Source of the DNA: Paraphysomonas bandaiensis | Lineage: Eukaryota > Protista > Chrysophyceae | DNA: 64,000 nucleotides | Direction: 5' to 3' | Assembly: GCA_965644295.1 (NCBI GenBank) | Contig: CBFFRP010000433.1 | Location: 248,001 to 312,000, forward strand | Shown: piece after piece, positions 26,575 to 61,204 of the stretch | Layout of the letters: each line of letters begins with the position of its first letter | How positions within the stretch are numbered: the first letter of the stretch is position 1 | Notes under the pieces: model-generated | Databases searched by the model: none | The model's input: only the letters and a program-made list of their open reading frames with translations | Told to the model about the DNA's origin: nothing | Translations under genes and position numbers: made by a program

Positions 26575-27066
26575 AAATAATAAATTACTTAACTGAACAA
26601 GGAGTGCTTTCTTCATTATCATCCAAACAGAACTTGTGAGAAGTATATTGTAGTCTTATGAATGTGTACCGTGTGTTAAAAACAGTCCCATTCGTGCTTA
26701 GAAGAGTATTTATAGCGAAACAGTATGTAATGACTATAATTTATTTAATACGTTGATTTCAATTTTTTTTTCGAAACAATATGTTGATACAATCAAGATT
26801 TGACATTATTAAGTGGTAAAGACTTAATAGCGAAACATGATGTGCACACAGATTAAATTAGAAACATATAGTAAAATTGTGATCAATATCGCCAAATTCA
26901 TGTTTTCTCAGCTTCCAATTATTTTCATACGGTCTTATAATATAATATTATGTTGTCTTGAACTGTAATGTAAGTCAGCGTCACAATAACAATGTGGATA
27001 TATTATTTCTAAGCGGTCCAACGATATGCAGCAATACAGTATATTCACAATGTAATATTCCCTGTT

Positions 27067-27485
27067 TCCGTCAACTAAATCGGACTCGCACCCTTTCGTG
27101 ATGTTCTGAGGGATGAGGACCGGATATATTCTCCGGGATACTAACGTGAGCCGCATATATGCATACATAGTCAGCAGATAATGTGCTGCCCACTCATAGC
27201 CGAATGCTTGTGTGGTACAAGTAAACTAATATTAGTGTCCCTGGTGTAGAGACGTCTTTGGGCCCACCTCAAGGGCATCCGGGATATTGGGCTGCTGAAG
27301 TCAAGCATCCTGACCAGCAGATGTCAGGTATATCAATATTCTGCTTGCTCACTACTCGCTCAATGATAAAGCAAAAGTGGCTGCACGGTGACAATCAAGC
27401 AGCTTTCGTAGCGATAAATAGTAAGCTGTCAGAGTTAAGCACTGACTCTTTAACGCCTATTGCTAATAATAAGACATTCACTATT
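27067..27485 (+). mobile_element. SINE-like retroposon copy (5'-truncated) sharing the LINE 3' tail
   Basis: Flanked by the 12-bp direct repeat ATATTCCCTGTT (27055-27066, 27486-27497). Homologous over its length to 36306-36745 (minus); the 3' part matches the LINE 3' UTR at 39424-39620. Confidence 0.8.
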
Positions 27486-27726
27486 ATATTCCCTGTTCCT
27501 GAAATACATAGTCTATCCGAGTAGAGCAGCAGCTAAAACACTCAAAGGAGTGTAACCAATTTTCTTGTCAGTGATGACAGCAAACAAACAGAACAATAAA
27601 CTATTACTAACATATATTTACGTAGTTTCAAATAAAACCCTAACTCTTATAAACACGAAGCCGCAAAGTACAACTTACCCTAGTCGCTAGACGAATACAT
27701 CCAATAAATCTTACACTTCTTGAACT

Positions 27727-30700
27727 TCATTCTTTTTCCAGTGCACCTAAAAACACCCAGAGAGATATAAGTCCATTGAAATGAGGAAATGCTCGTACGG
27801 CTAAAACAAATTGCACTTCAGGGTGCTTGTTCTCATGTATACTGGCCGAGCGTACTTTCTCCACTACTGACTCCACATCTGTGTAAGGTATGTTTATTGG
27901 ATAACCTGTGAGCCGATGTGTACGAAGAACACCCTTGAGTCTATGGGTCGCCCTCTCCTCTATCGCCATCAGGACATTGCTCGGAACGCCGCCAGAGGAA
28001 GACAGTCGGGTGTTACCAAGCGCTCCACTGGAGGATACAGCAGCTACGTTGCGGCCGTCGATAGTTCCGTTGAGCTTCCATTCCTCAAGAGAAGTCAGCA
28101 GATCTGTCATAACTGCACAGGCATCAGGATGGAAAGCTGTGACTGACCGGGGACGCTTCGACCTCCACTTTCGCATAGATGCTTTTATATCGTTTTTGAG
28201 CAGCTTTTCTATCTCTAGACATGGACCAGGGGCAGTAGGAGTATAGGCGATTTCTCTCTGAATAGAGGAGAGACTTGTCACAGGAGGGTGGAATCGGTGT
28301 CCGAAAAGAGGTCGCCAGAGAGATGGGCGTAGAATATCGTAGCACAAGTCCTTCGGCTTAGATGCCTTCTGAATATTAGCCCAAATATTGTAAGGGGTCA
28401 CGAGGCAGTATATTTCAGAGAGTGGGCAATTTACATCAGCTGCGCTGTATACATGTCCAGTACAAGGATTCACCAGAAGATACGCTGACGCAGAAGTAGA
28501 CTCTGCAGCATTAGAAGATGTGCTGGGTTCTCTTCCTGCCCGTCGTATCATAACATACACTGTTTCACCTTCAGGTACTGCGTTTCCAATTACTAAGAAA
28601 AGCTCCTCGTTACGTACAAATTCAAGCGACGGATATCCTGGGTATGGTCGCGACTTTGGGTCGTCACCTTTTCCTTTCCTTCCCGCAGTATCGACATTAC
28701 CGGAGTAATTGGCAGTGGAGAGGTAGTAAAGGAAGTTATATAGGGCTGTCGCATGCTCTTCTTCATCTCCACCCATAATCTCAAACATTTGGGATGTTGT
28801 GCACCACAAGTCGAATTCTCCTACGAATGCCTGAGAGTCTGGTATAAATGGGATTAAAGATACAATGTGAATGCATCCGCGACGGGTTGTGACGCCAGGA
28901 GGAGGGCGTAGTGGCTTTAGGTACCGGCATATCAGCACCGACAAACCATCACTATTGGATCCATATATGGTGTATTTACGATTCTTGGTATGGGAACCGA
29001 TTTCCTTGAGAGAGTTGAGCCAAAACTGAGTGTACGCCACCATAGGACGGTCGGGAGGATATACCGTGGCAGCAGATATATCACAGTCCGTATAGGGTGA
29101 GGAGGTTAGAAGCGGGTCCAGAGTTGTCATGATTGTAATGTAAGTTGCATTAAAAGGACCACAGCAGAACCAATCTAGCTCTTTCATGGTGGCGGGGTCC
29201 AGTTGGTCTGTGTCAGTATTCTCCTTTCGGCGGAAGGGACGAGCGACACCAAACCCTAGCATGCTGAGAATCCCGCCGCTTTCCTGGGGCTCCTCTTGTA
29301 CGGTGGAAGGTTCGTGGCGGGATGTGGTATACCCATAATTAAAAGGTGGAGTATTTAGTCGGAACGTTCCTTCAATGCGTTTCTCTGAGAGTATGGTAGA
29401 AAACGGTATAGAGAAACTCCCTACAAAACCAGTTAATATAGCATTTATACATATCGGCACTGCAGTGTTTATACCAAGGTAGCGTTTCTCTTCTCGTATT
29501 GTGGACTCCCCCTCGAGAAAGCCCCCCCGTGCAGCGTCATCATTCTCCACCTCGTCGAATAAAGTAAAGTACACTTCATCTTCCACTTGTTCCAAATTAG
29601 CGTGGTTGAATTCTCCGTGAGGTGGATGGAAGGGAAGCGCTAAAGTCTGCTTCCACATCGGACATGGTCCATCAACAGTTGAAGTTCTAGCAGTACGACT
29701 CTGAAATGACACTTCTACAAAAGTTCTAACACGCTTACGCTCTCGCAAAAAGTGGGAATCTGAGTCAGCATGCAATAGACTAGTTGCAGCCCCGGGGTCA
29801 TCATCATCAAACTCGCTCGCTGCGCGTCCCCCAAAAGTTCGTCTGCTAGTTCTATTGCGGCCACTCTCAACCTCTTGTGTCGAAGAAGCACGTAGCGGGA
29901 CATTGCGAGCACTAACAACCTGAACAAGGAGCTCACAGTGGCGCGGGAGTGCCTCCGGAACTCGCTCCACTGCCCTTGGTTTCAGTGCCCTAGAATAGTG
30001 TAATATAAATAAAATACGATTGCAAAAGTAAGTACCTACCTCTTCCTTTCTGGTATACTGAACACCTTAAAAAATTCGAGGACAGACCATTCATTTAGCG
30101 GTGCAAGGACTTCATGTACGACGGAGGAAGTAACAACCTATGTTTTGCTTCAAACAAATGAAAGCACTATAAGATGGCATTTACCTTTTTCTTTCGAGCG
30201 CGTCGCGAAAGCACAATTTGTGAGTCACGCACTCTACAGGATATAGATATCAGAGGCCATAAACATTACATCCCAGTGTAACACGCACCTATTTAGAAAA
30301 GTAGTTGCCTTCATTGTTGCCCTGCCCTCCGCTTCTCCTTCTGTCTCAGTACCTGACTCAGGCTCCGCCAACTGAAGGTAATGTGGCATATTGGGATCCA
30401 GACCCTTTCTGATCTCCTTGGCCAACATCGTTCGGAATAACTCCGACTGCTTGATGGCCTCCTCAGATAATGGGATTCCCTCAGTAAAAAGGTAAGGTTT
30501 TATTTCGCGCAGCTGTAAAAGCTTATGCCGATTCGATAGCTGCAGATGGAGAAACTGGCCATAACTGACTCCATTCTCTCCATGAAGTGAAGAAAAGAAC
30601 TCTCCACCAAGTTGAAATATGTCTCGCTTCTTCAACCGGCCGCTAAGTATACCTCTGATTTGGTGTTGAACCACGGTATCATTTCTTGGGTCATTGACAT

Positions 30701-33700
30701 CAATGAGCTTCAGCGGTGGTAGGAGTTCGAAGAAGTCTTTCTCTCTAGTAAATTCCAATGATCCACCTACTATGCGCCCTCTACCTTGTGACTTCCATTC
30801 TCCTACAGCATGTGTGGGAATGTATGCAAAATCATTTCCATGAACGCCGTCATATGAATTTCCTACAACCACAGAATTTTCATGGGCATCAAAACCAACA
30901 TCGTATTCGGATCCGCACAGCAAAGCTCCTTCCACACGAACAGAAGAGACCTTCTTCCTGTTCCCCTGAGAGTCCACTCCCCTCCCCTTCGATGCGACGA
31001 TACGCGGTGAAGTGAAATCGTACCAGCCAATCACTGGTGCATAACACAAAGCAGGTACAGCACATTCCTTCCCCGATCTCTTGCTATTCTGAGTTTGTCG
31101 TTGGGAGAGAGGTACACCAATTGTCGCTACAAGAGTTTCGTTGGATATAATTCCCGCGCAACAAGCCAACGACGTGTGTCGCAGCTCATACGATGTGTAT
31201 ACGTTGAACACGGCCTCCGTCGGCTCCCTCAGAACCCGCAGCTCAAAGAGTCGGCCAACTTCAACCTTTAGAGCTGGCCACTGCAAGGGCTGCGGTGTAG
31301 TTGTACCGAGAACCTGTCCATTCACACGCAGAACGAGGCGGACCCGAACTCGGCGCAGCTTTCGTCGACGCTCAATTTCTGCAACGTCAACCTGAGTGTC
31401 CGGAGATATAGTACCTGGCAACACAGGTCACAACTTTACGCTAAGAGAAATAATACAGCGTGCTACCAGAATTGTGCAATTTATAAATAACATCTGGTAG
31501 GATAGTGTCATTCTCAGTGAGGTACTCCACAGCATCATCGACAAGTTTGAGTGCCCTTAGATGCTGCTCTTTGTGTTTGTTAGGTACTTCTGTAGCCTGT
31601 GCCTTGCTGTTAGAGCGCTTTATAGACTGTTGAGCGCTACTTGTAGGCGCCTCAGTGGACTCCACATCTGGTGCAAAATATCGGTACGCGTCATCTAGAA
31701 TACGTCGTAAATCTCCCAATTTCCCACGCAATTCATTCCAGCGTGAGATGTTTGGAATATGTCGAGGTGATTTATCAGACGTCACATCAGATTCCGATGT
31801 AGTTTCCAATCGATGAGCACGAAGGACAGCTCGGGTACTTACAAAATGTTGCTGCTTCCGGGTATCGACCAAATCACGCCATGTCTTGTAAACATCCTTC
31901 CCTGCAAGTATGTACTTGTCAAGAGCTGTTATAAAATCGTACAAACAAATCTTTACCAGATGCCTCAACTGCTGTTTTAAACTCGCACAGGGCGGGAAGA
32001 GTCTCCAGAATGTCAGTATACAACTTCTGCACAATACTGGAAGCCTCCGATTGTGGTATATCCACGACACTCAGTGGGTTCACAAAGTCCGACAGCTCCG
32101 ACAGAAGAGCCAAGAGCCTAAACAACAACATAAATCAGTAACATTTACGGCTATACACAATGACTGACCGATATGGCAGATATTCCATTGCATGCCCTTG
32201 AAACAACCTCGCATACTGAACATAGTAGCGCTTTAACTTGACATAAAGCGCTTCCTCACTTGACATCTACATAATAATTATCGCAAATAGCAATCATACA
32301 AAAAGCACTCACATAGGGATGGTCTGTAAGACAAAGCTCCTGCGCCAAAATCTTAAGAGTTACACCTTTCCTAATAGAAGCATAACCAGTAAAAAAATTA
32401 CAGGAATGCAGAGAGCAGTATTTACTTTTCTTGGTAGCCTTTGCTGTGCTCCGTATCGAAAACAGCCCCAGCAGAGTCCCGAGAATCTGGTCGCAATATC
32501 AGAGCGTTTTCCCCTTCACTAAACACTCCACGTTTCACAGTCGAAGGGTGAACCTGTAGTTCAAACACAACGTTACTAAGTAATGCTGAGATATCACAAT
32601 ACCCACCTGCTGCATAGTTCTCTGATCAACGAAATTTTCTAACAACCGGAGAGTTGGTTCTGTGCAGATGAGTCAGAGGCACAAGATTTCGTTTCTCCAG
32701 AGGCTTACCTCTTTCGCTAGCCTTTAGCAAAACACTTATTCCAGGTATTTGTCCCTTCATACGACATGACGTTGTGAGGAGGGTCTGCCATTGTTCGTGA
32801 CCTTTCTTTCCATCCTTTGTTTGCAGTTGATTAAACGAATCTATCAGGGAACTTGCATCACGGCCCAGCTGAACCTGAGCATGAATCTGTCGGAGTAAGT
32901 GAGAACTTCTACTGGAATACGCATCCCTCAGCAGCCTCTGCGTCGCCCTCGAAAGATAGACATTCGAACTGACAAATGTGGCTATTGGGAGATCAACATT
33001 CTCAGATCGCAGTAAAAGTTGTGCCATGATGTTGCTTGTGCCGGTATACAGTCCTTCTTCTCGACGGATTGGACTACGAACTTCCTCCTCCACAAAAACG
33101 TTGGGTATTTGGGTTAAACGGCTGCTGTTCTGTGAATTGCGGCCTAGTAGATGCTCACTTTCCTCAGGCAGTCCCTCATCTCTTCCCCTCCAGTCTGTTA
33201 CATCTCCGTAACTCTCAATTTCCCAAGTTCCCTCACGACGTGGGGGTAGGTTATGTGGAGAAGGAGAGCTTCGTAAAGTAGAACAGCTGGTACATATGCG
33301 TGTGCAGGACGGGTGTGCATAAGGTGTATGCAGCTGGGGCTGTAGTGAGTTTTCACTCCACCGACCAGTACATAGAACCTACAAAATCACATTACCCAGT
33401 CATGACAGCATACAGAGCGTTAATCACACACAAATATGACTTCAAAATGTATAATGCGTTTCCAACACGCATGCGATCTAGATAATGACCTACATGCTGG
33501 GGAAATATATGCATGGGTTGCTGAATATGTACAAGTTGTCCTGACTCGTCATCCTCTTCCTTGAGAAGAGATTGAGTATCATCTCCTCCTTTACCACTGT
33601 CCTTCATCTTCTTCGATGCTGCAACAGGACGGTCAGTAACCAATCTAATTTATAAAATTCTTATACTGTTATACTCACATCGCTGTTTCTGTCTGAGGGC

Positions 33701-34117
33701 TTCCAATCTCTTCATTGTTGCATCCCGATCTCTCTCCATAGGTTTTCCATCTCCTCCTACTTCACCAGATTGTTGTCGGTGTTGTCGCAACCTGTGCCAT
33801 GACAATAATACTTTACTCAATCACCTACTTCGTGTCGTCATAGCATCTAACCTTTCCAACGCTTTGCTTCTAGCTGAGGCAGTCCCTCCACGCCCTTCAC
33901 ACACAATCAATACATATACATCTAATTCAACAGACAATACATACCCGAATCTTTTGACCCATCTTTAGATACAGGAGTTGATAGAGGTTCACTTGTATCT
34001 ATCTCGAGCCCAGTAGCGAGCTTTGGTCTACTGTATATTATGATTTCAACCTATGAGCATATATCATAAATCAGACCTATTCGAAGGATCTCGTGGACGG
34101 GATCGTAACCCTGACAT
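27727..34117 (-). CDS. CC2D2A: CC2D2A / MKS6-like ciliary transition-zone protein, multi-exon
   Basis: C2 domain (VQVVSARNVPLR..FVEVSFQ..GPCPMWKQTL), CC2D2A C-terminal motifs (ICRYL.P..PP, VSLIPFIPD, GDEEEHA, NIWANIQ, FVLAV) and an N-terminal C2 exon (LRVNGQVLG). The start MSGLRSRPRDP at 34117 is tentative. Confidence 0.88.
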
Positions 34118-34514
34118 TCAAGAAGCGCTGAAAAACGTTTCAATAGTGATGTCAACTCTTGTTTCAGCCTCTATATGGCTTGTAATCCATTCGATCTCCT
34201 CTTCACTTAACTTTGAAATTAAAATGAATTTCATTTGAAAAAAAAAACTAAAATACATCCCATATATGGGATATAATCGAACTGATATGTATGAAGAATC
34301 CCATACAGAGAGTACGTTTGTAGGAATTTCTATAGTAAAAAATAATCTCATCAATATATAAAAGTCGGGATATTTTATTGACACTCGACGGATAGCGAAA
34401 TCCGGAAACGGATATTTTATACGGGAGTTACCAAGCCGTTGTGTTGTCTGGTATACGTATACTCTGAGTTGGTGTACAGGCAGTGGATACGAAACCAATC
34501 ATCTCAACTGTCAC

Positions 34515-35884: not shown

Positions 35885-36305
35885 GATGTTGCGAACACTG
35901 GCAGTTTTAAAATGTTAAGCAACGACTGATGTGATGACCATGCCATTATAATACGTAACGATATATAACGGTGGTCAATTCAATTGTTGATAGTGTGGTG
36001 AATACATGGTAATGAAAATACTCCCTTTCAAAAACAATCAATACGTGATGAGGGATATGTATGCAGACACACTCTATTATACTCGCTAAAAGTTCAAACT
36101 TAGAAGGCACCCTACTCAACCTAATTAGTAATTAAGGTGGTACCACACTGTCTATTATTAGTGATAATATCTTGCCAATCATTGACGCAACAATGATGTT
36201 AATTAATGGTCTTTATAATTTCCGGGACTAATTGCAAAGAAGTGAGATATTAGCGGTTACTTGGCTCTGCAACATACCCCTGGGTCCGATCATACTCCGA
36301 TCAGA

Positions 36306-36880
36306 AGTGAATGTCCTATTATTAGCAATAGGCATTGCAATTTAGCAAACTACTGCTTAACTCTGACACCCTACATCCTTAACTACAAGCACCAAGGTGC
36401 AATTACTTTTGCTCTATCACTCAAAGCAAACGCAGTGAGCAAGCAGAATGTTGATATACCTGACATCTGCTGACTTCAGGATTATTGAGTCCATAAGGTG
36501 AACAGGTCCGGTGCTTGACTTTGACAGGTAGCACAATACCTCCGCTACCCTTGAGGCGGGACCAGTGCCGGATTCCTATTTATTTATCAGGGCCCAAAGA
36601 CGTCTACATAAGTACCACACAAGCATTTGATTATGAATGGGCAGTGGGCAGTGGGCAGAGAATTACCTGCTCACTTTTGTTTCCCGGTACTTATCCCCCA
36701 TCCCCCAGATCACCACGAAAAGATGCGAGTCCGACTTTGTTGAGGGCTGTTGGTCAACATAAGGCAGCTTAACTCTTCACTGACGTCTAATTTGTTTGGA
36801 AAGCAATAATACTACCGAAAGCTCGATCCGCCCTAAGACTGAAAAAGTCAGGGATTGCTCAACCGCCTGAAGATCAACAA
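36306..36880 (-). mobile_element. Longer SINE-like copy with a degenerate tRNA-like head (36811-36880) and a LINE-like tail
   Basis: The reverse complement shares blocks with 27067-27485 (tcggactcgca, aatgcttgtgtggtac, gacgtctttgggccc, cagcagatgtcaggtatatcaa(c/t)attctgcttgctcact, tgtcagagttaagca, gcctattgctaataata(g/a)gacattcact). No TSD found. Confidence 0.7.
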
Positions 36881-36997
36881 TGCAACAAGTTATTATTACC
36901 ATTTCAGCGTTCTACACTCTAATTATACACAGTCTCCCTATTCAACATATTAACACAATTCATTTTTCTTTCATGGGAAGGATATAGACGGACTCAA

Positions 36998-37393
36998 TTA
37001 TAAGTACTTTCTTGGTCCTCTCCAACAAAGAAATCCTCTGAGAAGATAATATGCCCATATTTTTCTTCAATCTCCAAAATGGCTTTGTCATATATATTTA
37101 TCTCACGCTGCTTGGAATCGATGCCCTCTTTCATCATAGTTAACTCATAGAGAATCTTTGGTATAATCTGAGATCAGTTGTTTAACGCAACATACAAATA
37201 TGCGATAAAATGAGATGACCTTCTGAATAGCATTCTTTTCCAGTAAGAGTGAAGAAATTTCAGATTCAACCAATTCTCTTTCAGAGCGTAGATTCTGGAG
37301 ACCTGAAATATATATGAATAAAGGGAAAGATCATTAGAACTACACACGTGTTTGTATTGTCGACAGTGGATTGCCGACAGATGCTGAGTTCAT
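36998..37393 (-). CDS. SSNA1/NA14/DIP13-like microtubule-associated coiled-coil protein, 3 exons
   Basis: Not in the ORF track. Spliced: MNSASVGNPLSTIQTRLQNLRSERELVESEISSLLLEKNAIQKIIPKILYELTMMKEGIDSKQREINIYDKAILEIEEKYGHIIFSEDFFVGEDQEKYL*. The L..LR..RE...I....EK..IQ...YDK.I.E.E..Y..I pattern fits SSNA1. Confidence 0.7.
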
Positions 37394-37880
37394 TACTATT
37401 ACAAAGACAAATATAAAACTTCTGATATATATGTATGATAGCCTCTATGCTATGCACCTTGTGATAAGGTCACTAACTTATTTATGATATATATGGAGCT
37501 GTATGTTAGCAGGCAGGCAGCATCCAAATGATCGTGTTATTAGCTTATGTATGTATACCGTATAGCAATAATGGCGATGCAGCAGATTGTATTCCTCATA
37601 GTACAGGTCTGTATATGGTATACCAGTATCATATATTTGTAGTGTGGTAGAAAAAAAAAGATTGTTCAAATATTTCATTTGGTAAAATTGGAAAAAAACT
37701 ACCAATTCAGTGGTAACTTCTATATAGATTTAAATTTTGATGTATACAATTTTACATGTAAATATTTTTGATTTATGTATGTACATATACTGACTGACTA
37801 CTTCAGTTCGTCGTAGCTAGCTAGAGCGACACGAAAGCATCTTATTGCAGTACAAACATTCCATTAAGGAATATAATAAC

Positions 37881-39282
37881 ATGTTTTCAAGTCATTATCA
37901 AGATGGTGATGCTGGTATAGAGGTTTTAACAGCCTCTGGTAAGACACGATCTACAGGTTGGCATATAGGACCCTCTGTACACCGTGTATACGATAAAACA
38001 GTTAAAGGATTCGTTTATCTGCTTGAAAAACCCACTCATGCTGTAATGCATATACCTGAGAAGGGGAAAGCAACACTTGGATTGCGACAGATGTATCTGG
38101 TGATACAGATGCGGTGTAGTGGTAGTAAACCCGTCACTATGGAGATCGTTACATTAGACACCACTGGAAGAAAACATCGATTCCATTTTTCTTCTAAGTT
38201 TCGTGAATCTGACTCTAAAGCATTACATGCGCAGATTCCTCTTAGAGCGAAGTGTGAGTGGACTCACATTATTTTGAACCTGGCCGAACTATCCACTGAA
38301 CATTTCGGCGTCAAGTATGCCAGCGTCGACTCCATTTGCCTATCTCCTTGCTGCCGTATTCGAAAAGTATTCACTGTACCCTCTGTATTAATAACGGGAG
38401 ATATGTATGACTGTCCAGCGGTGTTCGACTTTCCTGCTGGGACAAACGCCACTTGGATGGTGGGGACTGCATATTTTGCTGAACCGACAAACTAATTTCC
38501 TGCTTTTGTAGATTCTCCCGGAGCCACCATCTGTCAAAATAGAGGAGCAACCGGAATTGCTGGTTAGTGCGGCACCTAGCCGGTCGGAGCCTGCGCGTAG
38601 TGTCAGTGCGAAAAAGAAAAGGGCTGCCCTAGTTGCTGTGAGAGAACGGCATAAAAATGAAACTCCAGTCTCTGGAAATGCAGATATGCAGGAGAAAGTG
38701 GCTAATCAAATTCAACCAACGAATAACGATGACATTGATTTCGAGGGTATGGTTCGGAGAGAAGAGATGAAAGAAATTAAAGCGAGTGAAACAAATGTTA
38801 GGGCTGAGGATGATATAGAAGTGCAGTATGATGAGGTTGAAGTAAGGGGAAGTGAGGAGGCCCCACCTTCTCCTGTATTAGTTCTCTCGCCAATAGGGGG
38901 TAACCCATGGAAGTCTAGTATACTTTCCCCTCCTCGATCTGCTCGGCTTGGACAGCATAGAAGTCCTCTCTCTTCGCACACTTTTAACGGCACTGAGGTC
39001 GGAAGTGACTGTACTCCTGACAGGGAGCGCAGAGAGAGGATAAAGGTTGTTCCGACGATACCACCGTCTCCGCCCCATACTAGCTCGGTTGAAGCTGACA
39101 ATATCGTCCCTCCAATGGAAACAGAAAACAGCGATCGCGGCAGGCAAGTGCTGATAAATAGGGAGCGCAGTGCCATGAATCACGGAGCTATATATGAATT
39201 AGAAAAGGTTTTAGACAAGATTGAGATGGAATTTATCGATGAGTATGGAGGAGACGAGTTTGCAAGATTAGTGCAGTCGTAA
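37881..39282 (+). CDS. CFAP20 (DUF667) domain protein with disordered C-terminus (CFAP20DC-like); intron about 38460-38511
   Basis: MFSSHYQ.G...EV, YDKTVKGFVY, LGLRQMYLVIQ, RFHFSS, LHAQIPL, W..I.LNL and CRIRKVFT match the CFAP20 domain. Confidence 0.85.
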
Positions 39283-39423
39283 AATGATATATCTGTAGTG
39301 ATCAGTAAGTAGTTTTTCCACGCTTGATGTATCTAATGTATTATACTATTGATTTGTTTTAGCGTTCTAACTATTCGCTCGCAACAAGCTGATAGTGTAC
39401 TTCGTATGAAGCAATATTTCACA

Positions 39424-40454
39424 TATTGAATGTCTTTGGATTTAGCAATAGGCGTTGAAAACCTGCACTAATTAGCTAATTAGTGGCTAGAAGAATACTA
39501 GACATACTATTTAAACCTCTACCCGTAACTAATCAATACAAACTCTTTTATCCTACTATTTAACGCTACAGAAGCTGCTTGTGCGTCGCCGCAAGCACCA
39601 AGGTGCGATCACTTCCTCCGTTCTTAGTGTGTGTTATAAGGCTCGCCATGATCGTGTGTCCTGGGACTCACCGGCGCGTGTGATCTGGAGGTCTCCCCTT
39701 GGGATGAGACTCCACTGTGTTAGGAGTTGGCTCAGGGTTTTGTATAGGGTTTTGTATTAATCTCCTGAGTGTACCGAGTTCTAGGTGAGTGGGCTGTGAG
39801 TTGGATAGAGTGGTGCGAGGAGGCGTTGAAAGTATGGGTACTGCTGCTGTGCTCTTTTTGGACATCGGGAGTAGATGGAGTTGCCGGAGACGGCGCCTTT
39901 GTGGGGGTCTGGACGGTGATAAATTCGTTTGGATTAGATCGGTGGGATTTGTGTGTGAGGCTGGAGGTGGCGCAGTCGCAGGTCTTCTGTGGACCCCTAG
40001 TAATCGTAGCACTCTCGGACGTTTCTGACGCGGTCGCGTGGGTAACCTAGGGAGTCCTTTGTGTAGAGTGATATAACGGCGGCCGCGATCCTGTAACATT
40101 AGCTTAGCTGCAGCAGAAAGCAGTTGAAGTAGATCAATAACCGCTGTTTCTAGGTTTTGAAGACTTTGTGCCGTCATGGAGATGTGTACGTGGTCTCCAA
40201 AGATCGTTTCAAGTTGGGCTGTTGTGATGGTTCCGGTCCAGTATCTCTCCACCTGCAGGATGGAGGGATTCCAGGCCCTACTGGAGAGTCTCTGTAGCGC
40301 ATTTATGACCCAGTGGGGTTGGGTCTGCTCTCTTTGTATATTTTGGAGAGCATTTACTTCATTTGAAAGGCAGCCTCCCTTAACTGGATGATGGAATCAT
40401 GTGTGCAGTCTAGGCACATGTGTTTGAGAGAGTCCAGGCGAAAACCACAGTCAG
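39424..40454 (-). mobile_element. 5'-truncated non-LTR retrotransposon (LINE) 3' end, 1031 bp
   Basis: Exact 11-bp TSD AATATTTCACA (39413-39423, 40455-40465). It begins inside a CCHC knuckle (xSDCGFRLDSLKHMCLDC) and continues with one frameshift (..ERYWTGTI..) to a stop at 39668. The roughly 240-nt 3' UTR has no poly(A). Confidence 0.85.
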
Positions 40455-41063
40455 AATATTTCACAACTTTTGTAAAGCTAAAATTCGATAAAATGCTAGT
40501 AAAGTAGAAGCGTATCCTACTATATACTAGAAAATCTTGCAATACATAGTTGTAGGAGTTCCATCCATACTATTTTTACCCCCTGTTACTAATCCTCATT
40601 ACTAATCTATTGATCTATTGTTTACTAGATCCTGGAACTCATCTAAACTAAACGCTAAATAGTGATTCGTAACAATACAAGTCATAAATGTAGATCTGAT
40701 GATTAAACAGCAATATGCAAGTAATACTTGATGAATGTAACAGTGAAGAATACGACATTCATAGCGTGAAACGGAGTGTGAGTAGCTGCTGCTCCATAAG
40801 TTGTAAGTTACCAATAAATCAATAATTCCGAAAATTGATGAACTTTTCCCACATCAGATTCGAACTACTATTGCTACACATATTGCTCGAGTGTGGACAA
40901 ACGCACTGAATTACTGTGCATTACCCTCTCTAAATATATACTACTAGCGCATAGTTGTTCGTACAGAAGCGTCAAATCTACTTAAGATTACTTAGTCGTA
41001 GGCAAACATGCTATGACTACATCATGTGGAGCATCAATAAGACACCCACTGCAACTAAACGAA

Positions 41064-43156: not shown

Positions 43157-43297
43157 CTTCCTAAGAGATGCGAATCAAAACACCGAGCCTACGAAATTAA
43201 CCAGCACCTTGTACAGGGATGTACTGGCTATCCACAGGATTGATTGAATATATGACACCTCTGCATCACAACCAACTCCTCCTACACTGCATGCATG

Positions 43298-43496
43298 CAT
43301 ACATACATACATACATACATACATACATACATACATACATACATACATACATACATACATACATACATACATACATACATACATACATACATACATACAT
43401 ACATACATACATACATACATACATACATACATACATACATACATACATACATACATACATACATACATACATACATACATACATACATACATACAT
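43298..43496. repeat. (CATA)n microsatellite, about 50 units
   Basis: Perfect tetranucleotide run between the TM9SF and REV1 start codons. Confidence 0.98.
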
Positions 43497-43672
43497 GCAA
43501 AGAAGGTTGTTGGAAATTGAAGTGGGTGGTAAGATATGTATATGTATATGTATATATATATGGGGGGTTGAATTCTTCACACTCTATGAGGGGTATGCAT
43601 AGCATCACTCTACCCCCTACTCATTCTACTACACAACTCATAGTATGACTTAACTCCCTATCATCCTGACAT

Positions 43673-47159: not shown

Positions 47160-47830
47160 CCCCATTTTGTCTCAAAAAATGCCTTTTTTTGACCTGATTT
47201 GGGCTCAACAGGGCGCTCATATCAGCACCGGGAAAATATAGACATTCAACTTCAATATTCGGTTGAACAGAAGCTCACTTCTATCTTCATTATGATAATG
47301 ACAGTCGAATGTACGTGATTTCATTATAGTACACAATTATAGAGAAACCACAATCATGAGCGAAATACCAAAAGCAGATCATCTAACACTCCAGGTTATA
47401 TTCCATCTCATATCATACACACATCCTTCGATAAGGTGCACTTGCAGAGGTAAAGCCTGCTGTACTATATAAATGTGATAATGATGCTAATTAAGGCAAT
47501 AACAAGCCTCTCTTTCATCTTCAACTGTTTACATTTATTATCACACTTACAGTATACATATCATTCATTTAAAACTATATGAGTTCTCATTTGTGTTATT
47601 CATGTTAATCAAGGAACATCTATTTCTTAATACAGCAAGCATGCTACTAATAGCTATTATACAATCTAATAGTAACTTTTCAACGTCATGAGGATAAGCT
47701 ACAATTTAACCTAGGGATAAGGAGTATCGTCCCTTGTCTAAATTTTAAAACTCGGGCTTTTCGCCCTCGTTTCAAAATTTTGAGCGCGGGACGATATAGC
47801 CTCCTTATTGCCCGTGGTTAAATATAACTA
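47160..47830. mobile_element. 671-bp non-coding insertion in the copia 3' LTR, ending in a roughly 130-bp imperfect hairpin
   Basis: Absent from the sister LTR; TAT (or TA) is duplicated at the junctions. 47697-47830 folds back around GGGC-TTTTC-GCCC. Confidence 0.85.
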
Positions 47831-49437
47831 TATGAGAGTTACCATACTTCATTCATTGACATTCACCAACTCTTTTTATCTCTGCTACACCAACCATTTC
47901 TAGTACGATCTTACATCGTCACTATCTTGTACAGTCAGTATATTTCAGTTTCATCACTACAATGGCTATCATATTATTGGTTCTCATACTACAGCTAGCT
48001 ACTACTGTATTCTTTGAGTAACGGATATAATTCTAATATCTTGGAAACTACAGCTTTTAATTGCTCACAAACAGCAAAACTCAACACTCCCTCTCAATTC
48101 AAAGCTGTAAAACATGGCATAACTGACGGATACGCAACCACCGAAACCATATAGGACAAACAGGTGGACGTCTGGCTCCGACGTTTCAGCTAGCCTCTCC
48201 GTAGACAACACGTTTATGAGCCTCTGTTTCGTTTGTATGAATTCTCTCTGATGACGTCCACAGATGACTTCTGATCTTCTCCTAGACATCTCTTTCTATG
48301 CTTCTCATATATAACCCCACACAAAGATTTCGTAAATATGTCTGCAGTCTGGTTATCAGTTCCAACGTGATACAATATCGCAGTGTTAAAACGTCCTTCT
48401 GGATCTACATGTTCACGCACCCAGTGGTATTCGATTTCAATGTGTTTTGATCTTTTGTGGAACACTGGATTTAATGCTAGATCACGAGCACTCTGGCTAT
48501 CTAGAAGAATGGAGTGGGTTCGTACAGTCGAAGTCCCAATTCGGCCAACACCCCCCGAAGCCACACCAGTTCTTGCATGCCAGCGTACATAGCTTGGTAC
48601 TCACTCTGCATTGAAGACGTAGACACAGTAACTTGTAAGATTGATTGCCAGGTGAGTGGTCCACCTGCTGCAAACACAATGTATCCAGTTGTCGACCTTC
48701 GTGACACAGTATCGCCTGCCCAGTCAGCATCTGTGAAAATATGCATGTCAAAGCTCTTACCACTGAACCGAATACCTTTCCGCACAGTACCCCTGATGTA
48801 TTGTAACAAATAAGTCATCAACTTGCATGTAGCCTTTGCAGGTTTCGAAGCATATCGCGACAATAGGCCAACAGTATACGCAATATCTGGACGCGTATTC
48901 ATTGATAGATATAGCATGGCACCTAGTAAGCTACGATAGGGATAATTGTCGACTCCCTCTTCCTCCTGAGATGAGTTCTCACTATCAGTGCAATTAATCC
49001 TGTCCATGGCATCTACAGGTAGTGGAGATTTGCGAACTTTGTTTGAAGGTCCAAGGAATGCTGCATATTTGCTGAGATTTTTTTCAGCGTATGTCGATTG
49101 GTCAAGTTGAATATATTTCTTGGTCCTTGTAACTCGAACGTTGAGAAACTCCTTGGTGGCTATATCTGATAATGTCAGAACATATTTATATCCTTGTCTG
49201 GATGGGCAATTGAAATATACAGCAATGTCCACAGAAATCTTCTCAAGGAACTCTGTAGCTTGCAGTTCGTCATCTCTCTTTGCGGTGAATGATTTCCTTG
49301 TCATCTTTGATTTCGTGCAAGCTTTACAAATACCTTTCATTTTTCGTAAACTCTTCTTGCTGAGATGTTGTCGGGTTAATCCGCTCCCGGTAAAAAGTCT
49401 GTGTTTAAACGCTTCAATCAGCTTATGTTTGCAACGA

Positions 49438-49584
49438 AGAAATTTCCTTCATACGGTCAAGAAGGAGGATGGAGATATACAGACAACCAGAGCTGGATCC
49501 AGTTTCCTCATAGTGTAAACTGGATCCAGCTCTGGTTGTCTGTATATCTCCATCCTCCTTCTTGACCGTATGAAGGAAATTTCT
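49438..49584. repeat. Perfect 68-bp inverted duplication (11-nt loop) inside the defective copia
   Basis: 49438-49505 is the exact reverse complement of 49517-49584, at the junction where the protease-to-integrase linker is missing. Confidence 0.95.
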
Positions 49585-49820
49585 GTCCTTAACGATGAAC
49601 AGTTTATCAGAGGCACAGCTGTCTAAATACACGGGTTCATCGGAAGTGTGTAGCACCTCTTCAGAGACACATGAATCATCATGCGGTTCCTCATACATAA
49701 TCATGTTCACAGAGTCCGAATCTTCCTCTTGCTCCTCTCTCCGCAAAAAACGATTCCAATCTGTGCGTTTTGCAGGCTTTTCGTCGAAAAATGGCCGGTT
49801 TTTGTCTCCTTGTGCAGAGT

Positions 49821-50114
49821 CACTAACAAAAAATATAAAAAACATGGAAAAAATACATGCAAAAAATTTAAAATAAATAAACTTTTTACATTTTTTTTTA
49901 TAAATTTTACAGGGGGGGACTTGCAATTTCTAAATTTGTTTTAAAATTACCTGCTTTTTACAAAAGTTAAACTTTTTAATTTTTAAAATAGAAAAAAACA
50001 ATTTTCAATTTTTTTATGAAATTTTTCACACAAAAAAACAAAAAATATAAAAAACATGGAAAAAATACATGCCCAAATTTTAAAATTTTTTGAAAAGCAG
50101 CAATACGTACAGTG
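49821..50114. mobile_element. Very AT-rich insertion in copia gag; boundaries approximate
   Basis: A block of A/T homopolymers interrupts Gag after the second zinc knuckle. It has a 36-bp internal direct repeat aacaaaaaatataaaaaacatggaaaaaatacatgc and possible CACT...AGTG ends. Confidence 0.55.
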
Positions 50115-51865
50115 TACTTGAGCACGAAATTTGCACTTATACGCACGATGTCTGGTGTCTCCACATACATAGCAGCCATCTGATTTTTTCTTCTCGTTGT
50201 GGTCTCTGCGGCTCTCAGATCGATTCCTAGCGCCACGACTCTTTCCCTGCCTTCTTAATTTTGCAATCTTAAGATCTCTCTTCTTCTTCCAGCACGATTT
50301 CTGTGAGTGACCCCGTTTGCCACATTTGGGATAGCTGCACACCTCATTTTCATCAGCAGTGGAATTCATGTTTACTTCGTCGGTGCCTTCTTTCGGGACA
50401 CCTTTTGCCTGATCGTATCTCCTGCATATGGTGATCACCTTGTAGGTAGAGATTGGTGTACAATTGCTCCAAATCGGTTCGTGTTTCGAGGGCAGTCTGT
50501 AACTTCGTTTTTTTAGCGATGTCAGTGGGTGGTTCCCCCAACTCGGACATTTTTTGACAGATGCCGTTTAGTCGATCGATTGCTGCGCACACGAGTTCCC
50601 CCGGTAGAATTTTGAATCCTGCAAACTTCTTATTCAATTCAACTAATTCATATTGGATTTCCCCTCGAAACCGAACAATTAACCTAGAGATGAGTTCACT
50701 CGCTAACTGCTCTTTATCAGGATGGTCCTGCGGGAGCATATCCTTTTCCCGGAAGTACTGATCCACGATCTCAAGGGCTTCAGCGACTGGTTGAACAGCT
50801 TCAAATATCGAACTGATGCACGTGTCTTTCCTCTCCAGCCACTTGTTCAGATCCTCCTTGTACTTATTTCGGACTGTCACTGGCGCATTATTTGCTGGTC
50901 TTACTGGACGGTCTTCTAGACCCAGATGGTTCCTGTTCTTTTCCTCATCAACCACGCTTTCAGATTCTTTGACCAATTCACTACACCGAACTGATCAAAT
51001 ATGGGAAGAAGTTTCCACTCCGAACTACCATCCGCTACCATGTTAGAAAGTGACATTTTTAGTAATAAGACCTTCGTTAACACTTATATAGAATATTATA
51101 TAATTATGAGAGTTACCATACTTCATTCATTGACATTCACCAACTCTTTTTATCTCTGCTACACCAACCATTTCTAGTACGATCTTACATCGTCACTATC
51201 TTGTACAGTCAGTATATTTCAGTTTCATCACTACAATAGCTATCATATTATTGGTTCTCATACTACAGCTAGCTACTACTGTATTCTTTGAGTGACGGAT
51301 ATAATTCTAATATCTTGGAAACTACAGCTTTTAATTGCTCACAAACAGCAAAACTCAACACAGGACTTAAAGCTATTGAGTATTGAAAAGTATAATGTCG
51401 AATTTGAAATGTATTTATGATTACTCTTTAATTGTACTAATTTGATATATTGAAAATTAAAATAAATATACCTTCAAATATCAAATATACCCTAATAATT
51501 ATTGCATTCCTGAGAGCTGATAGTTAAGTACATCAGTCAGGGTTAGAAGACAATATATTCCTCACTCTCTGTGTTTAGGTAGGTGCAAGCATATAAATCT
51601 CAACCTTGATGTCGTTGTTTCCGCAGCTACTTTTTGCTATTTGCCAATACTTTACAGCAAGCGAAACTTTTTACATACTAAAAATCGGTTCATAGCAATT
51701 CAGTAAAGGTAATACTACTTAATACTGATTACATATAATACATGTTATACATGACGCGCCGATCGGCGCATAAAACTTGAAATCAAAGGCAGTTTTCCTA
51801 ATTAACTTTCCTATAAGATATCTTTACAGCAATTCGAAAACGTGAAACATAAGGCCTGTACATAC

Positions 51866-54518
51866 TCACTTCCGTGAAGAAATAAAATATAAATAAGAGA
51901 TAAGAGCTTCACACGCCATTGCTCTCAGTACCACAAATTGTAATGTTCCTGCGCTGATTCGATTATTTCCTTCGTCACCGAGTAATGATTTAAGGTACAA
52001 GTCGCACTGAGTCACGCGGCTGTATACTGCCGCCTGCTCTTCCAGAGACAACTGCCATGACACATGGCTTAGGCCGGAAATCGTTATAATCGCGTTGATG
52101 TTCCTGCCTGGTCGAACTGAGTCCTCGGCTTGGTCCACGCCACCTATACTTTCTAGTGCACCAAGATGAATGCTTATATCCAAATCCTCGCCCACTAAGC
52201 CCTTTACAACACGCGCAGGAAGAGAAAAGGCAGTAGCACATTCAACCAGAGAGCATACAACGCTATCGAACCATGGTGGATTCCTTGCCCTCCTACCGAC
52301 TCCAGCACGACAGCTACCCACAGATGCTTTCTGGCAGTACTCATGCACAGCCAGTAACGTCTCTATATCCGAGCCAATGAAAGAACCTAAACAATCGCCA
52401 CCACAGTGTCCATATATTATCACACTCTCGACTGAGGTATCCTCACCGAGAGCAGAGCACAACGAAGATGTTCCACAAATTAGGGAGGGAGGCATTCTGT
52501 AACCATTCAAACCCAGATGGCCGCTACTCATACTGACCACTTCTACCTCTTCCGCTGTAATTACACTCACACTCTCTTCCAGAGTTGAACTAACAACAGG
52601 CAAAATGTCCAGTTCATAATCACCGTGGACACTGCACCATAACGCCAGCACAACCTCAAGCCCCTCCACTTGACAGACACTCACTCCACAGACCTCCACG
52701 CCAGGATTAGAGGAGAGTGCAAGCTCCTGTGCCTTTTTTAAGAGATCTAACTCTTCTTTGGAGCAGAGAGCAATCAGTAGACGCTCTACACTTTCTCCGC
52801 ATGTGAGGCGCAGTCGTACATCACACACAAGGGCCCCAAAACCCCGCTGAAGGTGTGGGGACTCAGTACTAGTTGTAAAGAGGCAGGCAGAATTCAACGA
52901 CCCTACTGCACTTGCAAGTGCTTTGAATGCAGTACATACAGGTGCAGGAGGAGCAGGAATCCACAACATCGACTCCCCGTCCACGTCCAATGGTCCTACA
53001 AGTTGTACTGTAGCATTTACAGAAAGTACCTTCGCTTCCAGATTCCCGTTACTAGCTGAAATTGCATCTTTCACCGCTGCAATTGTTGTCGCAGGCTCCG
53101 AATGCGTAGGAGAAGGAATGTGGGTAATTTCTGTACTGAGAGGCCTGGACAGAGAGGGTCGCCTTTTACTCCCACGCCACCGTCCCGTTGCCCGCAGCTT
53201 CCCGGTTATCATTTGCCAAAGAGAGCCCTTAGTTAGGGATCGCATCTCATTGTCAAACATTTCACCCGCCCGTTCTACAAGTGACAAACGGAGTACCCGA
53301 TGGACGACCCACTGAACCGCAAAAGCGTTCACCAAGACAGCTACAACAACCTCGTCTCTACTGTCCCGATTAACATCATCGCGAACGCTGCTTGCAGTGG
53401 ATAGCACCAGAGCGACCCAAGCCAGACGGTATGAAGCTGTCTCAAACACACGACTCGTAAAGAATATTAACGCCGATGCAGCTAAGGCAAGTGTTGCCTA
53501 CAAATTGTTAAATGACGTAGAAATGAACTGTAGATAAACGCTTACCCGGAGGCAGTTATTGCGTATCTCCCTGTCAAATCCAAGATATGAGTAGGAGGCA
53601 TACGTTACACAACAACCTCCACACACTATAAGAGATGAGAAGTACAAAGCGTGGAACAATAGCCAAGCACGGCGATAGTCTAGCTCCAACTCAGCTGGCT
53701 ACAAAACATGTATTACAACAAAGTATATCAGCACAACCCGATAGTACCCGCAACGAAGAAAAATAAAGACGGTACGATTCACGCACTCGATCGCGGTTCC
53801 GGCGAGTAAGAATGAAGGGGGTCAAGAGAAGTGTGCATGCGCTCAAGCAAGCAACTAGAATGAACACGTTGAGTCCCCGAGAGTATGCAAAATATGCAAT
53901 CCATGACGCCTTCAGATACGGACACAGCCAGGAAACAGACATGCCAAGTAGCAACACAGCCTGAAAAAACATTTTGCGTGCTGACACCTCACGGTCACGA
54001 GCACGAGTATATGCCGGACGAAAACGGAGAGATATACTTGCATTCGGTGCAGGCTCACGCCAGTCATTGGATCGTGCGCAGAGGTACACAGGCTCAGCAG
54101 CAACGTGCACCACGTCTCTTGCAATAGAACCCGAAGGAGAATTAAGATGCAGCCAATAAGAAGAATTATGAAATATTTGAGACGTTTCTCTTGGCAATTG
54201 TTTCATTCGTAATATCTCAACGCTTCCCTGTACCTCAACAGATACACTGCGGCTCCCCCATAAGCTATGACAGTGATACAGCGGATATATACGGTCCAGT
54301 CCACTCATACAATACATGCCCTCTAAGAATCGAGCGGGATGATAATCTTGATTTCCAAAACATGAAAGATGATCTCTATCGACTGTACCAGTGAATTGAT
54401 TCCCAGTTACTGGAGGGAGTAGTTTGACGGGATAGCTGACGATAACACTCATATCAGCTGATGCTACAGTGAGGAGGAATAGGAGGGTGAGGGGGATGAT
54501 GGTGTATGGATGGTTCAT
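51866..54518 (-). CDS. Hypothetical multi-pass membrane protein with signal peptide (topology reminiscent of NEMP/TMEM194)
   Basis: Signal peptide MNHPYTIIPLTLLFLLTVASA, an extracytoplasmic domain, about 5 TM segments over 3 exons and a long C-terminal domain. The family call is weak. Confidence 0.6.
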
Positions 54519-55038
54519 AGGGGTATATAAGGAGATGCTTGATTGGATAGTGTGGAGTGATATGGATGATATTGTATGATACCAGCAGACAGGAGGGAGA
54601 GGAGTGCACAGCTCTACCAGTACATACATACATCTACAGCGTTCTCTATACGTTAACATCTAGACATGATGTGCTATTCTTCTGACTTGTGTACATATAC
54701 AACCTGTACCTATATACATCCTATCTGTACCTATATACACATACTGCTGTATATACATGCATACCTACGTACAGCAGTACATACACACGCAGAAGAGTGC
54801 ATACGTCAGTATAACACACTTACAAAACTGAAACCTTTCATTTCTGTCCCTTGAAGATAGCATTCTAATATATTTGTTTCTTAAGAAGTGAGGGGTTTAT
54901 AGCCTCACATTCCATAATCTCCATAGTCATTACTGACGACAAGGATGACACGTGTAAGATTCCGTTTGATTGCTTCAAAGATCCTGTTCATATATATACA
55001 TAAACACCCTGAACTTATAGTCAATAGATAAATTTATC

Positions 55039-56584
55039 ATGATATCAAAAGCTATTTGTGCTCTTCTCTTATCTGCTGTTGTCAGTGCTGAGATTGTTAC
55101 TGAGAAAGGAGTTCTTGTCTTGAATGACGATAACTTTGATGCTGCTGTGGCGGTGTGTTACTTTACTTATAGTTGCATATATATATAATAGAGTTTTATT
55201 TATAACAGGCAAATGAATTTTTATTAGTTGAGTTTTATGCTCCTTGGTGTGGTCATTGTAAGAAGCTTGCTCCTGAGTGGGAGAAAGCTGCTGCTGCTCT
55301 TGTTGGTGAGGAGGCTAAGTTGGCTAAGGTTGACGCCACTGTTGCCACTGGACTGGCTGAGAGATTTGCCATTCGTGGTTTCCCCACTATCCACTTCTTC
55401 AAGAACGGAAAGCAGATTGAGTACGGTGGGGGCAGAGTGTCTAATGAGATTGTAAGCTGGGTGAAAAAGCAGAGCGGACCTGCTGCCAAAACCATTTCCA
55501 CTCCCGAGGAGCTTGTTGCTGCCCAGGAGACTGATGACGCTATCGTTGTGGGATACTTCTCTTCTCTGGACTCTGCTAGCGCTAAGGCATTCCTTTCCAT
55601 TGCTGGTGCCGATGACGTGCTGTCCTACTTCATCTCATCTTCCGATCAGATTAAGGAGAAACTCGCTGTCTCTGGTGACTCTGTTGTTATTCTCAAGCCT
55701 TTTGATGACAAGAGAGCCGATCTTTCCCTGGGTGACTCTTTCGATGGCGAGAGTGTGATGAAGTTCATCGTTGGAAACTCTGCTCCTCTTGTGCAGACCT
55801 TTTCTCAGGAGGCAGCCAAGAAGATCTTCTCTTCCCCTGTTCAGAAGCACTGCTTGTTTTTCACTGACAGTGCTGCCGACCACCATGCCCCTGTCGTGTC
55901 TTCCCTCACCAGCGTCGCTGAGGCTTTCAAGGGCCAGGTTCTTGTCGTCAATGTGCCTGCCACCGAGGACAGAGTTCTTGACTACTTCGGTATCACCAAG
56001 GATACTCTTCCCGCCCTTGTTGTCGTAGACATGAGTGGCGAGGGTCAGATGAAGAAGTACCCCTTCGATGGCGACCTTAAGTCTTCTGATTCAGTCTCCG
56101 CGCACGTGTCTGCTGTCCTCTCTGGATCTGTTAAGCCTACCCTTAAGTCCGAGGCCGTCTCCCCTGAGGATACCATATCCGACGTTGTTGTCCTTCGTGG
56201 CAGCTCCTTCAACGGTATGTATCGATCGTGTTCCCTTGTTGCACATCCTCATATTTACTTGCAGAGCTTGTCCTTGAGAACGAAAAGGATGTGCTTGTTG
56301 AATTCTATGCCCCCTGGTGTGGACACTGCAAGAAGCTTGCCCCCACTTACGATGAGCTTGGTGCTAAGTTCCGATCCAACGATAACATCGTGATCGCGAA
56401 GATGGATGCTACCGCAAACGAGGTGGACGTACCAGGCATGAATGTCAAGGGATTCCCCACTCTGTACTTTTTCCCCGGAAAGGATAAGACCCCAGTCAAG
56501 TACGATGGCGGCCGCGAGCTCGAGGACTTTGTGTCTTGGATCGAGGAGAATGCCTCAAACGATGCCAAGCACGATGAGCTCTAG
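55039..56584 (+). CDS. PDI: Protein disulfide isomerase (a-b-b'-a'), 3 exons
   Basis: Signal peptide, two [11 protein letters not shown] thioredoxin sites and a C-terminal HDEL. Confidence 0.97.
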
Positions 56585-56998
56585 AGTACTCAAGACACCG
56601 ACATCAGGTGGGATCGTCTTATTAGCTGTATAGTTTAGGGCATGTGAGAATGGCTTTACACGATTAGTTGCAATAGATTTCCCTCCTGTGGTTTCTGCTA
56701 CCGTAATCAATACATTTGGCTACGGCATTTTTAATGTCATTTTTGTCCCTTAAGTATAGTAGCAGATTTTGCGGGTAGTGTGTTAGAATATAAATACCTG
56801 CTACTATAAATATGTGTGTCGCTGATTTCATATTGGGAGCGATAGTAATGTCGTGTTGTTATCCTGTGGTTGATTGTCGAGTTAGTTCAAGAACGTTTAG
56901 TAAATTCATTAATTATTCTAGCTATATATATTTTGTCAACAGAGTTAGCACATACGTAACGTGGTGTAAGCAGTTATTATTAATCTGTATTTTGTAGC

Positions 56999-57106
56999 AG
57001 TGAATGTCTTGTTTTAGCTATAGGCGTTTAACGTTTAAGAGTCAGAACTAATTTAGCATTGCTATTTAACTGACTAGTGACTAGTGCTTAATATCCTACT
57101 ATTTAT
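56999..57106 (-). mobile_element. Short 3'-tail remnant of the same LINE/SINE family
   Basis: agtgaatgtcttgttttagctataggcgtt...aagagtcag...atcctactattta matches the tails at 27420-27482 (reverse complement), 36306-36335 and 39428-39562. Confidence 0.6.

Positions 57107-61203: not shown

Positions 61204-61204
<1 letters not shown>

Follow-up and report, generated by a model that had tools for sequence, protein, structure and literature searches.

A SINE-like retroposon that shares its tail with a LINE

The DNA analysed here is a stretch of 64,000 nucleotides from the marine chrysophyte Paraphysomonas bandaiensis (contig CBFFRP010000433.1, positions 248,001–312,000; hereafter the window, in whose own numbering all positions are given). 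It holds four elements that end in a common tail. Two of them, a young copy at 27067–27483 (+; the 27k copy) and an older one at 36306–36746 (−; the 36k copy), are representatives of a discrete, high-copy, non-autonomous retroposon resembling a short interspersed element (SINE), and a ∼110-nt stub at 56999–57112 (−; the 57k stub) is the tail of the same retroposon. The fourth, at 39424–40454 (−), is a 5′-truncated, poly(A)-less fragment of the long interspersed element (LINE) type. From the arrangement of these sequences we infer, with a probability of about 0.8, that the reverse transcriptase (RT) of a LINE attaches to the structured tail of the short RNA, which lacks poly(A), and copies this RNA in trans by target-primed reverse transcription.

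The common tail had been proposed in an initial annotation made from the letters of the window alone, and the strings quoted there were all confirmed in place. The 15-mer AACGCCTATTGCTAA was found at 0–1 mismatch in exactly four places (27452–27466 on the plus strand; 36322–36336, 39442–39456 and 57014–57028 on the minus strand); when up to three mismatches were tolerated there were 6 matches, versus 1.45 expected. Three to five nt after each copy comes either AAGACATTCA or GGACATTCA, which can be summarized as (A/G)GACATTCA. In the 27k copy this terminal motif, AACGCCTATTGCTAA-TAAT-AAGACATTCA(CT), extends from 27452 to 27482 (+) and is common to the four elements; the majority of family members continue in common to 27482/27483 (...GACATTCACT), slightly past GACATTCA.

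Comparison of the SINE-like copies with the LINE fragment showed similarity confined to two blocks, a box of 41–51 nt and the last ∼36 nt (84% identity). The box (GTAGCGTTAAATAGTAGG...; 27386–27436, +), which is partly deleted in the 27k copy, is held in common with the 3′ untranslated region (UTR) of the LINE at 39541–39591, at 76% identity across 51 nt or 80% across 41 nt. The match of the 41-nt core to the LINE rises from 33/41 in the 27k copy to 37/41 (90%) in the family majority, because four majority variants (T at 27414, G at 27424, A at 27426 and A at 27428) carry the bases of the LINE. The LINE copy and the SINE-like element agree at every base of the 15-mer and of the last 10 nt. Minimum free energy (MFE) folding predicts the same helix in all four tails, in which TAGG from the box and CCTA from the terminal motif form the paired strands on either side of a variable hairpin (the sequences are too few for covariation), and the last ∼15 nt of the tails are left single-stranded in these predicted folds.

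Upstream of the tail the homology of the 27k and 36k copies to each other covers the entire body (at 72% across 195 nt, at 75% across 84 nt and, when gaps are included, at 64% across 472 columns), and the match to the LINE is limited to the tail, as had been claimed. All six reading frames are closed in the 27k copy; the SINE-like copies are non-coding and 417–441 nt long. The 27k copy is flanked by a perfect 12-bp target-site duplication (TSD), ATATTCCCTGTT, at 27055–27066 and 27486–27497, from the second copy of which the element is separated by the extra bases 27484–27485 (perhaps also by 27481–27483). The LINE fragment is bounded by an 11-bp TSD, TGTGAAATATT, at 40455–40465 and 39413–39423, again perfect in both copies, so that the two TSDs reported previously both stand. 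No TSD of at least 7 nt remains around the 36k or 57k copies, and poly(A) is absent from all four elements of the window.

The 36k copy has the 5′ start and the 3′ end of the 27k copy, albeit with a decayed head. It had originally been delimited as 36306–36880, of which the 3′ end was correct and the 5′ limit was not: 36747–36880 resembles neither the 27k copy nor a third copy described below, and these 134 nt are therefore flanking DNA, with the element starting at 36746. No terminal inverted repeats were detected in the SINE-like element (4–12 of 30 positions match). A DNA transposon or miniature inverted-repeat transposable element was rejected on this ground, and also because the TSDs are 11–12 bp long and 5′-truncated copies exist.

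Copy number, ends and age of the family

Contigs from four DNA runs were placed on positions 26400–28100 at a likeness of at least 80%. The numbers of contig pieces falling on the element were 5024, 2083, 950 and 667 in the four runs, and the pile-up spans 27084–27482. In run X3, where the depth of the flanks is ∼96–98, the summed depth climbs from 1,015 over 27027–27083 to 15,705 over 27084–27140 and 240,093 over 27141–27197; it is still 195,307 over 27426–27482, falls to 4,446 over 27483–27539 and from 27540 on stands at 97.6, i.e. at the single-copy level. Behind 27483, 48–138 loose contig ends per run were collected; they are AT-rich and agree with one another at only 0.40–0.43, so that the flanks must be unrelated and the 3′ end sharp. 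The initial annotation had predicted this pattern for a mobile family, namely many short copies with a common 3′ end and LINE homology limited to the tail, and thousands of contig pieces now bear it out, with a TSD on one SINE-like copy. The family appears to be young since a likeness of at least 95% to the 27k copy is reached by 36% of the pieces from X1. Both junctions of the 27k copy are bridged without a single mismatch by contigs of X1 and X3 (the contigs of X8 and X9 do not reach the junctions).

Loose contig ends were also found inside the element. Their consensus at 27221, 27315, 27353 and 27442 reproduces segments that are present in the 36k and 57k copies, from which it follows that the 27k copy is a variant with internal deletions and that the majority form of the family is longer. 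The consensus before 27442 matches the 57k stub, which is thus a 5′-truncated tail of the majority type. The most constant part of the body is a 37-nt core block at 27316–27352 (+), near-invariant across the family and containing an AGCAGA...UCUGCU hairpin: its depth is high, no variant reaches 10% inside it, loose ends occur at both of its edges and a single base differs in the 36k copy.

The third copy comes from a 661-nt marine metagenome contig of the Tara type (L006), which was found via one protein matching a reverse-strand open frame through the element. It begins with CCCTCAAC at reverse-strand position 381, behind 380 nt of unrelated DNA. There are thus three copies with an identical 5′ start behind unrelated DNA, at 27067/8, at 36746 and in L006. 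A further copy, devoid of the first ∼52 nt, lies at 416–556 of the reverse complement of contig L008, within a C-terminal LINE fragment of the opposite orientation; a gene caller had fused this copy with the LINE fragment into a chimeric ‘protein’ (P0011). Exact-pattern scans for the core and the tail of the SINE-like element gave no match in viral contigs or in JGI metagenomes.

The LINE fragment and its relatives

Identification of 39424–40454 as a LINE fragment is indirect. It relies on a CCHC zinc knuckle, on 5′ truncation, on the TSD and on relatives that are uniformly 5′-truncated. The knuckle end (..C-x7-H-x4-C) is encoded at 40357–40454 (−) and reads ..C-G-F-R-L-D-S-L-K-H-M-C-L-D-C.., after which 242 codons follow in another frame. 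These form an open reading frame (ORF) at 39671–40396 (−) that specifies a C-terminal domain with the sequence PQVERYWTG and a proline/arginine-rich end. In two relatives (P0009 and P0014) a complete C-x2-C-x7-H-x4-C is in frame with the PQVERYWTG domain, and an in-frame knuckle is also present in P0007; the window copy therefore carries a frameshift.

A whole-library HMMER search of 1.84 billion representative proteins with the 242-residue fragment returned 12 relatives, all of at most 310 amino acids, and 4 were obtained by a word search. Their source contigs are marine metagenome contigs of 0.6–2 kb that are 5′-truncated at differing points, as LINE copies are. Relatives at the DNA level (66–70% identity) are likewise on marine metagenome contigs (L002, L003, L005 and L009). 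JGI metagenomes scanned with a protein pattern of the LINE domain gave no match, and the protein Atlas provided only a weak lead to zf-RVT (score 0.89). The 5′ end of the LINE is present neither in the window nor in any of the loci fetched.

Within the 3′ UTR of the fragment (39424–39667, −) there are two small hairpins (GCAC-CUUG-GUGC and UGCG-GCGA-CGCA), a box with the sequence TAAATAGTAGG, a hairpin that is long and variable, and the terminal motif, which ends in ...GACATTCAATA. The box, GCACCTTGGTGCTTGCGGCGACGCACAAGCAGCTTCTGTAGCGTTAAATAGTAGG, is an integral part of the LINE UTR in three independent contigs (L002, L003 and L009) and exists in a diverged form in L001 and L010. In these last two contigs the second hairpin, UGCG-GCGA-CGCA, has become UGCA-GCAA-UGCA, a change that includes one compensatory pair and preserves the GNRA loop. 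The entire UTR is present in L009, where its end, ...CCTATTGCTAAAT..TTTTCAATA, is a sister of the ...CCTATTGCTAAAT..GACATTCAATA of the window. The more distant LINE subfamily represented by L010 (1560–1633) and L001 (960–1021) has kept the box and has a different terminus (...CATGTAATAATCAGATCTTT), which indicates that tails vary between LINE subfamilies.

The head of the SINE-like element

SINEs in the strict sense start with a head that derives from tRNA, 7SL, 5S or another small RNA and contains an internal promoter (A and B boxes) for RNA polymerase (Pol) III, and such a head was looked for by several means. ARAGORN found no tRNA in the window, and Rfam searches of the copies found no tRNA, 5S, 7SL, snRNA or ribozyme family at E-values up to 5–10. 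No B box was present within 2 mismatches and A-box matches occurred at chance rate only; a TTTT run lies inside the head of two copies. Given that there is neither a tRNA, 5S or 7SL head nor A and B boxes, the family is SINE-like and not a SINE in the strict sense. With this restriction, the original proposal of a SINE family mobilised by a poly(A)-less LINE is supported by the many copies with a sharp 3′ end, the common 5′ start, the closed frames and the confinement of LINE homology to the tail.

What the copies have instead is a conserved head of 86–88 nt (27068–27153, +) in which four helices, P1–P4, can be drawn in a topology like that of the hepatitis delta virus (HDV) ribozyme: P1 is CCNUCA/UGRGGG (CCCUCA/UGGGGG), P2 is CGG-ACUC/GAGCCG, the other two being P3 and P4. 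MFE folding of the three heads recovered a P2 of 8 bp and, for L006, a P4 of 8 bp; as drawn, the L006 head has a P1 of 6 bp, a P2 of 6–8 bp, a P3 of 4 bp, a P4 of 8 bp and, as candidate for the catalytic C before the 3′ strand of P2, C80. Head cells are paired at 88%, versus 36–47% in slid controls, and there are 0 compensatory changes among the 3 copies. P3 and P1 are separated by a 2-nt insert and P1.1 is doubtful. The Rfam covariance models for HDV, CPEB3 and drz ribozymes did not match the 150-nt stretches at E-values up to 10. A loose HDV-like descriptor matched L006 alone of the 3 copies; it also matched 1.1% of random positions and was discarded as evidence for being too permissive. The predicted fold is therefore best described as consistent with a ribozyme of the HDV-like type, which is unproven.

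A tentative extension of the tail-sharing model, which we would not rate as the likelier outcome, abandons the Pol III head altogether: the ∼88-nt head might be an HDV-like self-cleaving RNA, not derived from the LINE, that frees the RNA from Pol II read-through transcripts, with the borrowed LINE tail enabling its copying. If true, the ribozyme-plus-tail design of trypanosome and insect LINE derivatives would have been invented independently in a free-living stramenopile. The setting of the copies is a hint in this direction (n = 4). Three of the four sit 270–900 bp downstream of a gene on the same strand, which fits release from read-through transcripts; these upstream neighbours are ODAD1 for the 27k copy, EMP70 for the 39k LINE fragment and an ORF ending at 57376 for the 57k copy.

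Proposed mode of mobilisation and alternative explanations

According to the model that we favour, the last ∼100 nt of the retroposon would imitate the LINE 3′ UTR in three features, namely the box, a hairpin of variable sequence and, as terminal motif, AACGCCTATTGCTAA..AAGACATTCA. The LINE RT would recognise this structured tail, a mode of recognition termed ‘stringent’ and reviewed for LINE/SINE pairs in PMC3747384, and the short RNA would be copied in trans at AT-rich sites through target-primed reverse transcription. The expected outcome would be TSDs of 11–12 bp, a lack of poly(A) and 5′ truncation of occasional copies. The fixed 5′ end could be generated either by a ∼88-nt head excising itself from read-through Pol II transcripts or by an internal start site.

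Several observations weigh against this model or limit it. Parts of the box hairpins have been lost in both full copies of the window, so that the box is maybe dispensable for copying, and the terminal ∼30 nt are in consequence the sole part common to all. The ∼80-nt middle of the tail differs between the LINE copy of the window and the SINE-like tail, and it may be a different LINE subfamily that serves as the partner. Neither an RT nor an endonuclease was seen in the fragment or in its relatives of at most 310 amino acids among the 1.84 billion representatives (in the fragment itself their absence is due to truncation downstream of these domains), and Pfam assigned no family to the LINE ORF or to its relatives. 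Only one SINE-like copy in the window retains a TSD. Finally, the copy number is roughly of the order of 10^3, summed contig depth not being equivalent to true copy number.

Alternatively, the SINE-like sequence might be a short internally deleted element (SIDE), that is, a LINE derivative of the RIME/ingi or NARTc/L1Tc type that has retained both the head and the tail of its autonomous parent. The failure to find a Pol III head would be accounted for in this way, the head begins with CCC as those of L1Tc and NARTc do (primers in PMC3185411), and ribozyme-headed SIDEs are known for R2 and for the L1Tc/ingi clade (PMC3414825, PMC4035085). However, the ∼300-nt body between head and tail is unlike the LINE fragment and its relatives, and we regard such an origin as unlikely. 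It has also to be asked whether the common tail is only historical, having been acquired by past inheritance or exchange (for example by template switching), or whether a different enzyme does the copying at present. The blocks shared by the LINE copy and the SINE-like copy are only 76–84% identical with middle segments that differ, and the more distant subfamily of L001 and L010 has another terminus, as might be expected in that case. Against this, the box of the SINE majority is 90% identical to that of the LINE, there is no difference in the 15-mer or in the last 10 nt, and a LINE copy and a SINE-like copy lying within 13 kb of each other both have perfect TSDs of similar length, which implies that both were recently active; a merely historical connection is thus quite improbable in our opinion.

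Least probable, and hardly tenable, is the possibility already raised in the initial annotation as a potential refutation, that a second LINE subfamily has the 27k/36k sequence as its long 3′ UTR, in which case the copies would be ordinary 5′-truncated LINEs. It is true that 5′ truncation occurs in the family (57k copy and L008) and that the depth over the first ∼70 nt is ∼5% of that of the core, but the low depth of the head can be explained by short contigs together with the variant P4 segment of the 27k copy. Three independent copies begin at one base behind unrelated DNA, one of them right after a perfect TSD; a common start of this kind is not expected from random 5′ truncation of a long UTR, and on this ground we exclude the explanation. 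In addition, no coding frame adjoins any of the copies and all frames are closed.

Comparison with known systems

Tails shared between LINEs and SINEs are the classical evidence for the copying of SINEs by LINE enzymes. To our knowledge, almost all of the examples are elements with Pol III heads from animals and plants. The arrangement described here is a textbook one, but the lineage is new and the customary head of the tRNA type is missing; the short element very probably hitch-hikes on the enzyme of a LINE. A search of the literature gave no paper describing elements of this kind from Paraphysomonas or chrysophytes.

Both ingredients have precedents, since pairs with a shared tail are known and so are non-autonomous LINE derivatives with a ribozyme head (PMC3185411, PMC4035085, PMC3414825). 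The closest parallel for the tail is the eel pair UnaL2/UnaSINE1 (PMC3747384), in which a short non-coding element with the end of a LINE 3′ UTR, TSDs and a high copy number likewise is predicted to form a stem-loop with a short single-stranded terminus behind it and does not depend on poly(A). SINEs of this type have tRNA-derived Pol III heads, however, and often end in (TGTAA)n (PMC3747384), whereas the chrysophyte family has neither and possesses a unique terminus. In the absence of Pol III dependence it is more like L1Tc/NARTc, ingi/RIME and the SIDER elements of trypanosomatids (PMC3185411, PMC4035085, PMC3383444), which are non-autonomous, non-coding partners of LINEs. These also have a conserved, structured head of ∼77–90 nt starting with CCC, which in trypanosomes is an HDV-like ribozyme and a promoter. 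The trypanosomatid elements nevertheless arose by deletion from their own LINE, with head and tail in common, and end in poly(A); the chrysophyte family has a body without relation to the LINE fragment and lacks poly(A), and its ribozyme fold is unproven. The R2 SIDEs of Drosophila (PMC3414825) resemble it in being short, in having a ribozyme head and in having a 3′ RNA that is bound by the LINE protein, but they are site-specific for rDNA and clearly derived from R2, whereas the chrysophyte copies are dispersed in AT-rich intergenic DNA. Among stramenopiles, short interspersed retroposons are known in the oomycete Phytophthora infestans (PMC3429519). Those are described as classical tRNA-type SINEs, in contrast to the present family, for which ARAGORN, Rfam and the A/B box scan gave no tRNA-like head.

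The strategy of using a LINE tail would thereby be extended to a new branch of eukaryotes, in the form of an abundant and apparently young chrysophyte family with a different, structured head. The family offers a test case for the expression and the exact 5′ end of a short retroposon without Pol III, and equally for the features of the tail that are recognised by a poly(A)-less LINE. It also accounts for many assembly breaks and repeats in the Paraphysomonas data and merits masking or annotation.

Genomic setting and other repeats of the window

The window has a G+C content of 41% and is gene-dense; flagellar genes in it include ODAD1, CEP76, CC2D2A and CFAP20. An MMETSP transcript with the label TAXON_ID 36769, i.e. 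the genus Paraphysomonas (Chrysophyceae, Stramenopiles), matches the ODAD1 ORF at 99% identity. The part from 36000 to 41000 is also represented in runs of four differently labelled organisms and in seawater metagenomes.

Other mobile elements are present as well. A Ty1/copia-type polyprotein of 1587 uninterrupted codons is encoded at 18477–23240 (−), with gag, pre-integrase, SH3-like and RVT_2 domains (E-values down to 1e-52), and probably belongs to a young long terminal repeat (LTR) retrotransposon. Two direct repeats of 266 bp each (47822–48087 and 51098–51361), 98% identical and 3.3 kb apart, enclose minus-strand ORFs, one of which has a weak match to a copia-type gag; the arrangement resembles that of a non-autonomous LTR element of small size. 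A relative (69%) adjoins a truncated LINE on metagenome contig L004 (571–792). Immediately upstream of the 27k copy, ∼110 bp at 26856–26969 have ∼10–16 times the single-copy depth in the four runs and no second copy in the window, which points to another short dispersed repeat.

Tandem repeats were noted at several places. There are two tetranucleotide arrays, (CATA) with ∼52 copies at 43290–43496 and (TATG) with ∼119 copies at 60744–61212; the ORFs listed at 60726–61262 are likely spurious since the latter array overlaps them. At 7117–7435 a 33-bp unit is repeated 9.7 times with 98% identity within an ORF (7093–7683), where it corresponds to an 11-residue protein repeat. A composite array at 9410–9792 has periods of 37, 51 and 118, and its unit is inverted at 9693–9792.

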